From positions 965,147 to 1,029,146 of the forward strand of contig JALDTO010000155.1 of NCBI GenBank assembly GCA_023515725.1: 64,000 nt of DNA, given 5' to 3'. The position numbers and the translations under genes were made by a program. Shown one piece after another: positions 41,652-48,969 of this stretch. Each line of letters starts with the position of its first letter. Positions within the stretch are counted from its first letter, which is position 1. The notes beneath the pieces were generated by a model. The model made no database searches and was not told the origin of the DNA. It saw only the letters and a program-made list of their open reading frames with translations. The DNA comes from Amoeboaphelidium protococcarum X5 (lineage: Eukaryota; Fungi; Aphelidiomycota).

Positions 41652-44555
41652 TCATTAGCTAAAAAGTATATCGGCAACGTCCTTGTACGAGTCTACAAAG
41701 TGCACTTCAACACCATGCTTCACGGTATCATCCAACACGGCCCAATCGGCAGCATTATCCTTCGGAAGCAACACGGTCTTTATGTTATCTCTCTTGGCTG
41801 CGATAATCTTCTCTTTTACACCACCAATCTTCAACACCTTACCTGTCAGAGTCAGTTCTCCAGTCATGGCAACATCAGTAGGGATTGGTTTACCTGTGGC
41901 TAGTGATAGCAGCGCCGAGCACATTGTAATTCCAGCACTAGGACCATCTTTCTTGATCGCACCTTCAGGTACGTGTAAATGGATCTGTGCCTTATCAAAA
42001 AATAAGTTCTGCGGTTCTCGGTCGTGGATATACTTTTGCGCGTATGAATATGCAATCTGTGCAGACTCCTTCATCACATCACCAAGTTGTCCAGTTAATT
42101 TGATGAAGGCAGAACTTCGGCCATTCCTATTGTTATTACTTTCTACATTGGAGTTATTGCGTACAGGTAACGCTTTATCAAGACACTCTATGGTGAGCGT
42201 GTCACCACCCATACCGGTCCAAGCAAGTCCAGTCACTACACCGACATTGCTGGCTCCAGGTACTGATTGCTTTCTCTAGAATACCGGATTACCAACAAAA
42301 GACTTCAAGTTTTACGCATCCACCTTCACCATTTCCTCTCCTTGAACAATACGCAAAGCAGACTTTCTAACCACTTTCTCCAGGTGCTTCTTCAGATTCC
42401 TTACACCACTCTCTCGGCAGTATTAATCCATAAGTGTACGCAAAGCATCCTCTCCAACCTGAACTCGATCCTCAGACACACCATTCTACTTCAAAATTTG
42501 AGGTATTAGATACTTCTATGCAATCTACATCTTCTCCTCAGCGATATACCCACTTAGCTGTATAACTTCCATTCTATCTAATAGAGGACCGGGAATAGTG
42601 TCCATCACATTAGCAGTACACACGAACAAGACTTTAGACAAGTCTAATGGCATATCCATGTAATGATCCATGAACGTAGTATTCTGCTCTGGATCCAACA
42701 CTTCGAGTAAAGCACTAGCAGGATCGCCCTGACTTCCACCATGACCAACTTTATCTATTTCGTCAATGAGAATAAGCGGGTTTTCAGTCTACACCTTCTT
42801 AAGAGCCTATACCAACTTGCCAGGCATAGCACCAACATACGTTCGTCGATGTCCCTTAATCTCAGCAACATCGTACAAACCACCGACACTGAACCGATAA
42901 AACTGACGATCCAAAGCTCTGGCGATACTCTTTGCAATCGAAGTCTTTCCAACACCAGGCGGTCCTTGCATACAGATAATCTTGCCTTCGATGCTGTGCC
43001 TCAGTTTGGCAACGGCAACAAATTCCAAAATCCGATCTTTAACATCCTTCAATCCATAGTGATCTTCATCCAATACCTGCTGGGCGCGACTGATTGAATA
43101 GGAATCTTTACCACTTTTACCCCATGGAATTGATGTGATCCAATCCAAGTAATTATTAGTCAGATTATACTCTTGAGCGGACGGTTTAAGTACATTCAAC
43201 TTGCCCATTTCCTCTTCAAATACCTTCTTGGCATAATCAGGCATATTCAGAGCCTCAACTCTCTTTCGGTACTTGTTCATAATCTTATCTCTGCTCTGAG
43301 ACTCCACACCCAGCTCTTTCTGAATATTTCTCAGCCTCTTGTTAAGAAATGCCTGTCGATCACTGTCACTGATCAATTGTTCTAAATCTGCAGATATTTT
43401 ACTTTGCAACTCTGCATTCCTCATCTCCTTTCTTATGGCGTTATAGGACAATTCCAATTTCTATTTGACATTAGTAGTCTCCAGAATCTATTGCAACTAC
43501 TCACCAGGAACATCAGACATGGCCGCGGCAAAATCTGCAAGTTTAGATGGATGTTGAGTCAACTGAATATTGGGATCATCTGACTTTAACGAGTCATCCT
43601 CATTAAATACACCAGCCAAGTTGCTATTACCGTCGCCATCCACTCCCCCGTTCGATTTGAAAGAGCCACTGACAGACATACCACGTACAAATTCGGAAAC
43701 TTGATCACGTACAAGAGGATTCAACTTGGCCATTTCATTCAGAGTGGCCACTATATCTCTGCTCAATTACTAGATCTCAGAGTCTTTTGTATCAAATGGC
43801 TCGTCTTTTAATTCTAGAGCAACGACTTTGGCACAACTTGTCTTAAATTTGCTATTCAGCGCTTTAACGTCAGTGGCCGGAGATTGGTCGTCTTCCTTCT
43901 GATCACTTACTGCTGATGATAATTCAGCTGAACTCTTTAAAGGACGCTGCGGTGAGATAAACTTTTCCATCTTGACGCGCTTCATAGGATATAACAATAG
44001 AGTCATTGAGCCACTTGGTTCAGCAAGAACATTGAATATCTGTGCCACAACACCCACGGGATGGATATCATCGATGGACTTTATCACATCACTTGACCTA
44101 ATTTCCGAACTGCCTTTCACAGTTGATCGCGACCCATTAACTTCCTTCTAATCCCCTTGTTTATATTGTTACTATGATGATGAAGATGATTAGTCTTGGT
44201 CTTAATTCATCTACTGCTCAGCTAGAGTACGAGTGAGAAAGACAGACACGTACGGATTATTCGCCTTCAAATTATCCTGGACACATTTAATAAGACCCTT
44301 ATCTTTTATGCTTATAGCTTTAAAAAATTCTGGGAATAGAGGTCTGTTGTGGACAGGAAGAGCCAGTAGTTCACGCGGTAATTTACTCTTGCCACCTGCA
44401 CCACCATTAACATTCGTCACTGCATTCTCAATTATCGATAAAGCTTTCTAAATACCATCGTTCCCAGACTTGGACCTCCTTGCATTATAACTAGCAATTT
44501 AAGGAACTGCTCTACGACCAAGTGTAATAATATTCTAACGTTAGAGTATCATCAT
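41652..44555 (-). CDS. PIM1: Mitochondrial Lon protease
   Basis: Lon N-domain [64 protein letters not shown]. Confidence 0.95.
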
Positions 44556-44771
44556 GATGTTCTTCGCAGCACTAAATTTACTAGTGAGAGAGAGAGAACG
44601 AAAAAAATTTAAAGAGGATATGGATGACGCGCTTTTTGCCATTGTGGACGAGATGTAAACTGCGAAAAGAGTAACCATAAAATTATGAGTAGGGTAAGAG
44701 TATATTAATCAAATTATTCTTTAAGATTCAAGTCTTATTGTAGATGTAACTAATAATAATAATGGAAATAT

Positions 44772-46007
44772 TCAGTCGCTATGGATTGTAGTAAGGAATG
44801 GGTGTTGTAGAGCAGTTTCAGCCGTGAGTCTGTCTTAAGGCTTCAATTTCAGGCACCTGCTAATAAAGTCCACCATTTAGGCAAAGCTGGCATCATTCAG
44901 ATATTGCCCTGTAGGATCCAGTATCTCTTCAATAGACGCTTGCAAATAAGGGTCGCCGGCCACTTGTTCGTATATCAAGGCAAACTGCTCTTCAGAAAGA
45001 CTATAATCTTTTTTGAAACGAACCTGCAGCTTATGTTGATATTCATCAAATTCCTGATCATTGAGATCTTTTGTTATCAGAGGGAACGCGATCATTCGCT
45101 GTATATCAGTTGGGTAGGACTTGAGCAAAAGTTTACCACTGAAGAGCTAGAAAAGCGTCATACCCAGAGACCACATGTCGCTCTAAATCGATCCTTGACG
45201 ATTAAGTAGGACTTCTGGAGCTTCGAATTCCTGTGTGGACCGGTGCCATTGTTCCCCAGGCCAGTCCAGAGAGTTGCCATGCGAGAGTCCAAAATCTGCT
45301 AGTGCAAAGAAATCTATTCGCGCTCTGTTTTAACCAACTCGCAGAAGGATATTGTCAGGCTTCACATCATTGTGCGCGACACCACCCAGATGCATCGGTT
45401 GAAGACATTGAAGGATTTGATGGGCCACATCGCGTACTTCTTACACCGTCGCTAAATCTTGATGTCGATTTAACCATCTCATTGCAATCATGTTCTACAA
45501 ACTTCCATCAAAGAGAGGAAATACGATAGCGTAGTAAGATACAAACAAGTAGCTCTTTAGTGATCCAGCACAGTGTTAAGACAGGGTGGTGGCGAATGCA
45601 GCATACTTGAATTCCCGCAAACCATACCAAAAATTAGCGTCCATATACAAAGTATGATCATAACGCGTCAATTACTCTTTAATTGACTAATCTTTCACCC
45701 GTGGGAACACTTTCAGCGCAACCAGCGTGCCAGTGCAATGATCAAATGCCTTGACGATAACGGCATGAGGTCTTACAGCAATCACTTATGTAATCTAGTA
45801 GCGATAAGCTATAGATTCTTCAGGCCTGATGAAAGTTTGTACCAAGTCAGAGTGATAGCAGATATTCAGTGGACTTTCTACCTGTGTCTATTCAAGCTGC
45901 GACAGGCCTTGGAAAATTCTCATTCGCTCGTCATTGTCAGAAATTTGTCTAGCAAACAAGACGTATTAAAACGCGTTAATGAGACCAAACAACACGTATA
46001 GCTTCAT
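44772..46007 (-). CDS. Signal-peptide-bearing DYRK-derived protein kinase K1 (Gly-rich loop degenerate)
   Basis: MKLYVLFGLINAFQYVLFA, IAYRYQ, DHCTG.LVALK, HNDVKPDN, DFGLS, EAPE, SDMWSLG, HPF; 411 aa. Confidence 0.85.
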
Positions 46008-46241
46008 TTTATAGGACCTCCACTGCATTATTGAAAAGATTATTCAACTAATAAATGGCGTTGCAACCTAATAACATGCGTGCGTCATTAACGCGGACTT
46101 TAAAATTTTGTGCCTCCGACGCCACACGCAAACACATGGCCGGAGTGCAGCCCCTGGTGAATTCGAGTTTAATATTTGTTTAGTTAGTAAAAAAATGATT
46201 TTGGTGTCTCTAAATCTATTATATTATTGTTATGAAATCTT

Positions 46242-47480
46242 TCATTAGTATTCTGAATTCTAAATCATCTAACCATCTGCATAATGTTAATTCTAATTGT
46301 TCTAAAGCGGGGAATCGGGTAACAGAAACGAGTGAATACTAAGTTCAACAGCACTTTGCCTGAAGTAATGATTAAACTCCAGACATTCCTATACAAAACT
46401 GAGCAGATCGTCAAATGGAGCATCACGACATTGATCACGCTCCTGTCTATACATTGCCTTTTTCAACGGTCGCGCCAAGTAATGATTAAGAGCCTGAGGG
46501 CGCAAGTTCCTTTATTAAGCTAAAGCTAGAAGCTCCTAATTATCAGTTTACTGATTTAAAATGGATTCCAGAGTAATTGAGTGATCAGTCAGGAATGCAT
46601 CAGCTAATAATTAAAATTTATCAGGCAAAACTAATGAAAATACAGGCTTAGATCTATAAAGTTCAGCCACAATCATTCCCAGTGACCAAATGTCGCTGCG
46701 ATCATTACCTCTACCCGTTTAAATGATTTCTGGAGCTTCGTACCACGGGGTGACTCTATGCCAGCCACATTAATCTTCAGTGCAAGACAGCCCAAAATCA
46801 GTTACTCCTATTGTAGGATTATCAATTGGACCAGTGATCAGAATGTTCTGAGGTTTCAAATCATTATGAACAATGCCGCTTGCATGCAATGACACCAAAC
46901 AATCCAAAATTTGACTCGTCACTGATTGAATAATTTTAAATGTATCATCACAGCTCATTTTTGAGAGGAAATTTCTATTATAAGTCATCAAATCTGTACT
47001 ATACAGAGGATATGTGATAGCGTAGAAATCTTCAAACCAGTAATTATCAAATGCCGCCACACAATAACTACTGCTTCTTACAGCAATACTGGATGCAATT
47101 TTATACTCATCCTGACCATCTTTTAAATAGAAATATGGCTCACGCGTGCTTTTACCTTTGAGTCGATCTCTCAATATTTTCAAAGCTACCCACTACCCAG
47201 TGCAATGGTCAATCGCGCGATAAACCTGACCATATGACCCAGAGGATAAGAGCTACACAGTTTCATATCGGAAGGCAATTTATTCATGCAGCTTTTCGAA
47301 TGTTGGGTGTTGATCAACGTAATAGCAGATATTGGCATGATTTTTCACCTGAGATTAGTAGTGAGGAGTAAGAGTTGTATAAATTCTCATTTTCATCTCT
47401 TCTGCGAAAACAGCCGTACCAGCATTAGCCACGTACGGCCACAGTAGCATCAGTATCAAGACTAACGCGTGACAATCCAT
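46242..47480 (-). CDS. Signal-peptide-bearing DYRK-derived protein kinase K2
   Basis: MDCHALVLILMLLWPYVANA, IAFRYE, SGSYGQV, DHCTG..VALK, HNDLKPQN, DFGLSC, WYEAPE, SDIWSLG; 412 aa. Confidence 0.88.
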
Positions 47481-47778
47481 CCGTGATATCAGCAGAATAA
47501 AATTTAATAATCGAGATAAATTATCTAGTCGCGTAAAAATGAGAAAAGCCATCGGCGATCAGTCGGCAAGAGACGCAAGTATTGTTCCCCCTTATTCAGG
47601 CCTCAAATCACATGCGCCCAACGATACATCTTGCTGTGATTTCGTTTTGTATGTAACAGAGAAAATATGGTAAAAAAATCAGATTAAAAGTAAGATCTTG
47701 CATTTAAAAGTATAAAAAATTCTTCACTGCATTCATGGTGTTGGTATAGCTATTAATATCGAATGACCAATCGTTTAA

Positions 47779-48969
47779 TCAAAAGTCCAGAAATGGGTTC
47801 TCCAATGCTGCCTGTGCATTTAAGCGCAGCTGTGGTTAAAACTTCAGGCAGCCTTCCACGAAAGCATGCATCTACTCATATAATTGATCGTGACAGAGCT
47901 GTGCTTCTTTTCGATAAAGCACTCGATCTAGTCCACGCTGCATGTATCCAATAGGATCCACCCCATAGGCTTGTGCAAACTACATGCGTTTTTGCGGAGG
48001 CACTCGCAACTGATTTCCAATTCTACCTTTCATCAGAAAATCATTTGATAAGCAAGCAACGGCATACAGATGTGAGAGATCATTCAATTTGATACTGAAT
48101 ACTGGCTTAGTCCGAAACAATTCAGCCACTATCACCCCCAGCGACCATATATCACTCTGAACATTTCCACGCCCATACTAAATAATCTCAGGAGCCTCAT
48201 ACCAAGGAGTAACGCGTTTCCATTCACAGTCTTACGTGTAACAAGAAATTCCAAAGTCTGTCACTGCGACAAAAGGATTGTAAGGATCTCCAGAAATGAG
48301 TACATTGCCAGGTTTCAAATCGTTGTGGACAAGACCACGATCATGGATATGTTTCAAGCATTACAAGATCTGGCGCGTCACTGATTTTATAAGTCTATAC
48401 GCATCATCGCAATCCAACGTACTCAGGAAATTCTTGTTATAACTGCTTAAGCTTGTGTCGAACAAAGGATAAGTGATGGCAAAGTAATCAGAGAACTCAT
48501 ACGCATTTAGAGCATGAACACAGTGTGGATTTCCTGCCACCAAATCGCTACCTGCAATATTATATTCCCTCCATCCTTCTTTGACGTACTCTGGAAATTT
48601 GAGACCTTGTGGGGAGTCTAGGGTAAAATCCAAGATATCGTCTTGGTCTCGATTCCTGAAAATCTTGAGCGCGATCAGTTCCCCTGTGCAATAATCTTTC
48701 GCCTTGAAAACTTCGCCATACGCGCCTTCAGATATTTTCTCAAGAGTTTCATATCGATAAGCCACTTGCTCCTTGATTCCCATGAACGTCGGTCCAAATG
48801 CAGTATACAGACAAATATTTTCTGGATTCTTTACTTGATCTCTATCTTTTTAGCTCAGATTATTGAATATGGTCAATTTCTCATCCATTGATGTAATCTC
48901 GCGACCACACACCACAGACACGCCAACCGCTAACGCAACAACGAATACCCTTTACAATGCCGAAATCAT
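47779..48969 (-). CDS. Signal-peptide-bearing DYRK-derived protein kinase K3
   Basis: MISALQRVFVVALAVGVSVVCG, VAYRYE, EGAYGEV, DYCTG..IALK, QILQCL, HNDLKPGN, DFGISCY, WYEAPE; 396 aa. Confidence 0.88.

Follow-up and report, generated by a model that had tools for sequence, protein, structure and literature searches.

In a 64,000-nucleotide stretch of the aphelid Amoeboaphelidium protococcarum X5, an intracellular parasite of green algae (contig JALDTO010000155.1, positions 965,147 to 1,029,146; hereafter the window), three protein kinase genes, K1, K2 and K3, lie in tandem, and each of the predicted proteins begins with a hydrophobic leader. Where do such kinases come from, do they leave the cytosol of the parasite, and what could they act on? 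Profile, tree, NAPA1 and fold tests support an origin of these genes and of a fourth paralogue, K4 (together the K family), from a DYRK2-class kinase, followed by amplification. Based on hydropathy and cleavage motif, K1-K4 are predicted to be secreted, and we give a host-directed action of these predicted secreted kinases a probability of about 0.5.

K1, K2 and K3 were defined by translation with genetic code table 6. All three are uninterrupted, intronless open reading frames (ORFs) of 396-418 amino acids (aa) on the minus strand, as are the features within them given below: K3 at 47779..48969 (396 aa, Pkinase E 6e-38), K2 at 46242..47480 (412 aa) and K1 at 44772..46028 (418 aa; a second ATG at 46007 gives 411 aa). 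The K3-K2 spacer measures 298 bp and the K2-K1 spacer 234 bp (213 bp if the upstream K1 ATG is used). A first-pass annotation of this DNA, which had reported three same-strand, intronless kinases of about 400 aa at distances of 234 and 298 bp, was therefore correct on this point. Amoeboaphelidium protococcarum is also the source species of the public proteins matching the window's kinase genes, and the UAR-to-Gln code of this aphelid has already been published (PMC5304391). Across the 23.6-Mb genome, in-frame TAA or TAG codons were present in almost all kinase matches, which occur as near-identical pairs. Given this genome-wide presence and the published code, an artefact of reading through stops was ruled out; since TAA and TAG encode glutamine in this species, the kinase genes are intact and not broken.

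Contig C205, which belongs to the second subgenome, carries a homeologue of the entire array at 90% identity, and a second strain has two more copies. The corresponding NCBI proteins (MIR68_007006-8 for the homeologues; MP228_000194-6 and 004031/36/37 for the other strain) are all named "hypothetical protein", so the expectation that automated annotation would miss the genes was mistaken: NCBI holds all three. An upstream ATG of K2 at 47552 was ruled out, as it is frameshifted in the homeologue, which makes 47480 the right start. The ratio of nonsynonymous to synonymous substitution rates (dN/dS) between subgenomes was 0.16-0.25 for K1-K3 and 0.33 for K4, with 0.10 for the neighboring Lon protease as a control; between strains it was 0.09-0.19 for K1-K3. 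The K genes are under purifying selection, and pseudogene status of K1-K4 was ruled out by these values together with the intact alleles.

K4 has a strong leader and is located on contig C249, with a homeologue on C98. Identity among the four paralogues is 25-45%. The amplified family proposed at first pass thus exists, at a modest extent: four paralogues in two subgenomes are confirmed, plus a few candidates. Three loci (C155:623187-623477, C146:480182-480472 and C298:57203-57487) matched the N-terminal profile over its full length from NAPA1 to strand 3, and with their DYRK2-type N-termini they are candidates for less-derived members or the parent lineage. Another tandem set of three HND-x-KP kinases, at intervals of 1.5-1.7 kb, is found at C57:300193-303486 and C249:419828-423126 and gave weak N-terminal profile matches. 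Relatives of the K family outside the species were not found in searches of limited sensitivity that also missed K1 or K4, so that absence from other aphelids is not established.

For the leaders, we scored the best 12-mer hydropathy within the first 32 aa and used 119 HCD-type DYRKs as the comparison set. K2-K4 reached 2.5-3.1 and K1 1.6-2.2, while the comparison set averaged 0.22 and did not exceed 1.47. By this measure, a leader is present on all four paralogues (13 alleles) and on none of the 119 DYRKs. Small-residue cleavage motifs directly follow the h-regions, just ahead of the conserved module. The 22-aa leader of K3 (48904..48969), which shows zero amino-acid changes between subgenomes, is predicted to be cleaved after V-C-G, and the 20-aa leader of K2 (47421..47480) after A-N-A; the predicted signal peptide of K1 covers 45951..46028. 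The N-terminal stretch is the only hydrophobic one in each of K1-K3: a second transmembrane (TM) segment was not found in them (best internal 19-mer hydropathy <=1.3), nor was a retention signal for the endoplasmic reticulum (ER; KDEL/HDEL) in the K1-K4 family. These results agree with the leader on each kinase and the lack of a second TM segment described at first pass; the proposed re-routing to secretion has sequence anatomy and conservation as its sole support.

Proteins bound for lysosome-like compartments likewise enter by way of a signal peptide. The kinases could accordingly travel together with hydrolases into food vacuoles and the central digestive vacuole, where engulfed host cytoplasm or vacuolar proteins would be the substrates, and aphelids are indeed phagotrophs with such a vacuole (PMC3975115). 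We regard this destination as quite unlikely: N-glycan sequons are nearly absent from the K kinases, and acidic, proteolytic lumens would be poorly suited to kinases.

The ancestry of the kinase domain was addressed by several comparisons. The K2/K3 profile scored 122 bits with DYRK2 in the PDB, 107 with DYRK3, 95 with CDK4 and 80 with HIPK3, and hidden Markov model scores were 118-152 bits for class-2 DYRKs versus 75-108 for class-1/YAK and 85-119 for CDK/MAPK, with unequal group sizes. The family gave a full-length Pkinase match and a placement in CMGC. In a 63-sequence tree, which did not include the other aphelid DYRK2-type loci, K1-K4 grouped in one clade (100/98), which sits on a long, basal branch within DYRK/CLK/HIPK (99/95). 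They fall inside CMGC and not in a described secreted kinase family outside it, the placement that the first-pass annotation had named as fatal to its proposal. The motifs that it had listed as shared are class-2 DYRK motifs, with two corrections: K2 has QILDCL in place of QILQCL, and K1 has DFGLSH in place of DFG.SC.

A position-specific scoring matrix (PSSM) of NAPA1, built from 82 class-2 DYRKs, scored highest where the mature protein begins in 5/5 sequences tested (K4 p<0.001, K2 p=0.014). The putative NAPA1-derived module comprises two short helices and a strand in K3 (48808..48885), with the family cysteine (IC) at its end; in K2 (47322..47399) it was identified by PSSM and fold alignment, and in K1 (45855..45932) it is the best PSSM window, alone not significant. 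Profile-profile comparison of the short module alone yielded a weak match (E 0.076) and no PDB match. An AlphaFold model of the K2 homeologue (predicted local distance difference test, pLDDT, 91.6) aligned to DYRK2/3 across 321-338 residues from model residues 1-8 onward, whereas the alignment to CLK/DYRK1A began only at residue 32-45. This match is partly circular because the input alignment of the model was rich in DYRK2s. A poor model from seven sequences (pLDDT 47), with no DYRKs in the input, still gave an alignment to DYRK2/3 that begins at residue 20-23, ahead of that to any other kinase among the matches listed. NAPA2 is retained as A[YF]RY. The class-2 signal of the family resides in the N-terminus, and, as judged from sequence and models, the mature protein opens with a NAPA1 module of the class-2 type. 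The genome still contains a canonical class-2 DYRK pair with intact YxY (C164:179k/C136:133k), a YAK1-like pair (C207:562k/C233:143k) and a third DYRK pair known by position (C146:867k/C36:34k).

With class-2 DYRKs (human DYRK2/3/4, fungal Pom1-type) the K family shares the fold, the NAPA1 helices, the AYRY of NAPA2, DFGxSC, QILxCL, DxWSLG and a non-RD catalytic loop; it differs by the predicted signal peptide, new cysteine positions and an identity of only ~25%. In DYRKs, Arg325 and Arg328 hold the phosphotyrosine that forms in YxY, and the cysteine of HCD is close to the cysteine after DFG (PMC3677093). The YxY tyrosine and the equivalents of both arginines are lost in K1-K4, and the catalytic loop is HND, not HCD, in all copies (HNDLKP at 48311..48327 in K3). 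Additionally, the DH box (DDxxGxY) is mostly deleted, with a linker about 25 aa shorter and no DD..Y motif. With YxY, DH box and HCD lost, K1-K4 are DYRK2-derived and not DYRKs. Their activation loop has an invariant Trp and Thr, and a second loop cysteine has been added in K2/K3: the activation segments of K3 (48187..48258) and K2 (46728..46799) both contain Cys-x4-Cys and no YxY, that of K3 with the invariant Trp and YEAPE replacing YRAPE. Five cysteines are invariant across K1-K4, two of them ancestral. From these changes we infer a phosphorylation-independent activity, an altered substrate specificity and possibly a disulfide stabilization. As marks of secretion, two of the changes are weakened: 17 other HND-x-KP sites occur in the genome, where many receptor-like kinases (L021, L023, L024, L028, L029, L035, L039, L040) also have the HND loop, and the cysteine of DHCT is present in 3/109 class-2 DYRKs.

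The lysine, glutamate, catalytic aspartate, loop lysine and Mg-binding aspartate are invariant in all paralogues. K2 and K3 retain all catalytic residues (in K3: K102, E135, D217, K219, N222, D238, APE, D273 and R382) and are probably active. The Gly loop of K1 is degenerate (AVRPHA at 45762..45779 where GxGxxG is expected, identical in the homeologue), with catalytic Lys/Glu/Asp retained, and this protein may be weak or a partner. In K4, DFG is replaced by DYS, and the asparagine of the catalytic loop is missing from one allele. Such losses, along with the long branches, would fit a family of secreted, mainly non-catalytic binding or scaffold proteins, i.e., pseudokinases like ROP5. The invariance of the five residues at 25-45% identity speaks against it, and we give this possibility very little credence.

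What the kinases could reach depends on the biology of the parasite. At the trophont stage the aphelid is an amoeba that lives inside the host cell and engulfs its cytoplasm (PMC3975115), and a soluble secreted kinase could therefore meet host ATP and substrates. In the host-directed scenario, an aphelid-lineage gene for a class-2 DYRK would have gained an N-terminal signal peptide, and copying of the leader-bearing gene would have produced at least four paralogues, among them the three of this array. The proteins would be translocated into the ER and cleaved to soluble kinases of ~375-390 aa, possibly disulfide-stabilized and active without autophosphorylation. The amoeba would release them into the algal cytoplasm, which it inhabits and engulfs and where ATP is present, and they would phosphorylate Ser/Thr proteins of the host with a specificity that is no longer that of DYRKs. 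In its working, this would resemble the ROP kinases of Toxoplasma, with a different ancestor.

To our knowledge, the known secreted protein kinases are either atypical (Fam20, VLK) or belong to lineage-specific families of apicomplexans and oomycetes. Plasmodium FIKKs, for example, are exported kinases and a precedent for kinases sent into a host. The Toxoplasma ROPK family (PMC3682881) also consists of parasite-specific, soluble eukaryotic protein kinases with a signal peptide, an N-terminal helical extension, conserved cysteines and both active-looking and degenerate members. In contrast, the K family is small, derives from CMGC/DYRK and has neither the WC motif nor a rhoptry, and its secretion is a prediction from sequence. 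No ROP was among the 60 best PDB profile matches or the 50 best fold matches, and the alphaF WC motif was not found in K1-K4. Phytophthora CRN8 (PMC3426532) is a further precedent for a kinase sent into the host cell; the K family differs from CRN8 and FIKK in having no CRN translocation domain, no FIKK motif and another kinase ancestry. Fam20A/B/C, VLK, POMK and Fj have a signal peptide or anchor and function in oxidizing lumens, as predicted for the K kinases, but are atypical or basal kinases, none of them CMGC-derived in the accessible part of the source (PMC7948968). We found no description of a DYRK or CMGC kinase re-routed to secretion in the literature, the genome paper (Mikhailov et al. 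2022), with a possible kinome mention, being outside the search, and the searched portions of text and supplements of a dual RNA-seq paper do not name such a kinase.

Several observations weigh against a host-directed action. The leader of K1 is the weakest of the family, and the mature K1 and K2 have odd cysteine counts. The selection on the K genes is purifying and not diversifying, contrary to many effectors. A leader on a DYRK needs no parasitism, since free-living tunicates have a leader-plus-HND DYRK (see below). The DYRK2 origin is a separate matter; it is otherwise in line with the first-pass proposal, but the tree did not nest the K clade with the aphelid class-2 DYRK L066. This grouping was rejected (approximately unbiased, AU, test, p=0.017), and therefore the parent was possibly another paralogue, or the tree placement is distorted. 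As to expression, four runs of a single study, dated 2021, yielded public contigs that span each ORF, with a coverage of ~0 in the spacers that otherwise varies by gene and run. While this RNA-like pattern indicates transcription of K1-K3, the four runs are not recorded as RNA, and neither transcript starts nor expression levels can be read from contigs. On K2, these contigs end 18 nt inside the ORF and the contig of an older run 16 nt inside, making a leaderless start at Met11 possible for some alleles.

The K2 ends would suit kinases that are not secreted at all: translation from a downstream start could bypass the leader, or the leader could stay uncleaved as an anchor, and the product would be a divergent kinase in the cytosol or tethered to a membrane. 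Two K2 alleles are annotated by NCBI from Met11, which removes the leader. Against this, Met1 of K2 is retained in 3/3 aligned alleles and Met11 is Ile in one allele; the contigs on K1 and K3 extend 10-40 nt upstream of their ATGs; and all four paralogues have a leader with small-residue cleavage motifs directly after the h-region. We consider a cytosolic or tethered family very unlikely.

The tunicate parallel came from a metagenome scan, in which we detected a class-2 DYRK of Oikopleura dioica (CBY07823.1) that has HND, a leader of hydrophobic residues and a pair of cysteines in its activation loop. The tunicate kinases of this kind (L081:1228-2764; proteins P0290-P0296, P0370) also include Styela clava XP_039267860, with the loop HTD. 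Like the K family, the tunicate group combines class-2 DYRK ancestry with an N-terminal hydrophobic leader, HND/HTD and two cysteines in the activation loop; unlike it, the group keeps the DH box and YR[S/A]PE and has a longer N-terminus. The group is on a separate branch in the best tree, a single clade with the K family was not rejected (AU p=0.27), and convergence is the simpler reading because of the taxonomic gap. No paper on tunicate leader-bearing DYRK2-like kinases was found in the literature. They are candidate animal secretory-pathway CMGC kinases with a signal peptide or anchor.

The occurrence of a signal anchor, HND and an activation-loop cysteine pair in free-living animals also speaks for another role, in which the K proteins would work in a lumen or outside the cell on proteins that the parasite itself secretes (cyst wall, infection tube and surface receptors), as Fam20C/VLK do in animals. 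Purifying selection, the conserved new cysteines and the many receptor-like HND kinases of the genome are consistent with such a role. However, neither a TM anchor nor a retention signal would hold the proteins in the ER/Golgi, and the lack of relatives in other lineages, in searches of limited sensitivity, is unexpected for a housekeeping lumenal kinase. Overall, we find this role unlikely, though the most probable alternative to the host-directed action. We tentatively propose, with somewhat less than even confidence, that in this parasitoid of algae, from a sister lineage of fungi, the K kinases are the first host-directed effector kinases known to descend from CMGC/DYRK, and that the changes they underwent (a leader, HND for HCD, no phosphotyrosine switch, new cysteine pairs) have a parallel in tunicates.

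If true, it would reveal a repeatable route from a cytosolic DYRK to a secretory-pathway kinase. Aphelids crash algal mass cultures, and K1-K3 are concrete, soluble and easily expressed candidate effectors for subduing the algal cell. Further, the K family offers a natural experiment on DYRK activation, as NAPA1 is retained and the tyrosine whose autophosphorylation it aids is lost.

The locus itself varies. One allele of the other strain has a ~7-kb insertion in the K3-K2 spacer (site 47598..47616), found at L049:2904-9865 (GCA_023515745.1) and encoding a PIF1 helicase, a Pox_A22-type resolvase and two unknown ORFs. All of its ORFs use the host TAR=Gln code, and the flanks have a possible 5-bp duplication (TGATT). 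We record this as an observation of a polymorphic mobile or virus-derived element. A viral origin of the kinases, hinted at by a feature match to giant-virus kinases, was dismissed, as no viral contig relative turned up. On its downstream side, K1 is adjoined by the Lon protease gene (41652-44678, minus strand). The sequence TTCAGGCC occurs five times in the window (33857, 33909, 35023, 45819 and 47595; 1.4 expected), once upstream of K2 and once within the K1 ORF, a weak enrichment given that 2/100 shuffles reach five. An identical 15-mer, ATTGCTTATCGTTAT, is present at about 25 places on many contigs, which suggests that it belongs to a dispersed repeat or to a family of RNA genes and has no connection with the kinases.

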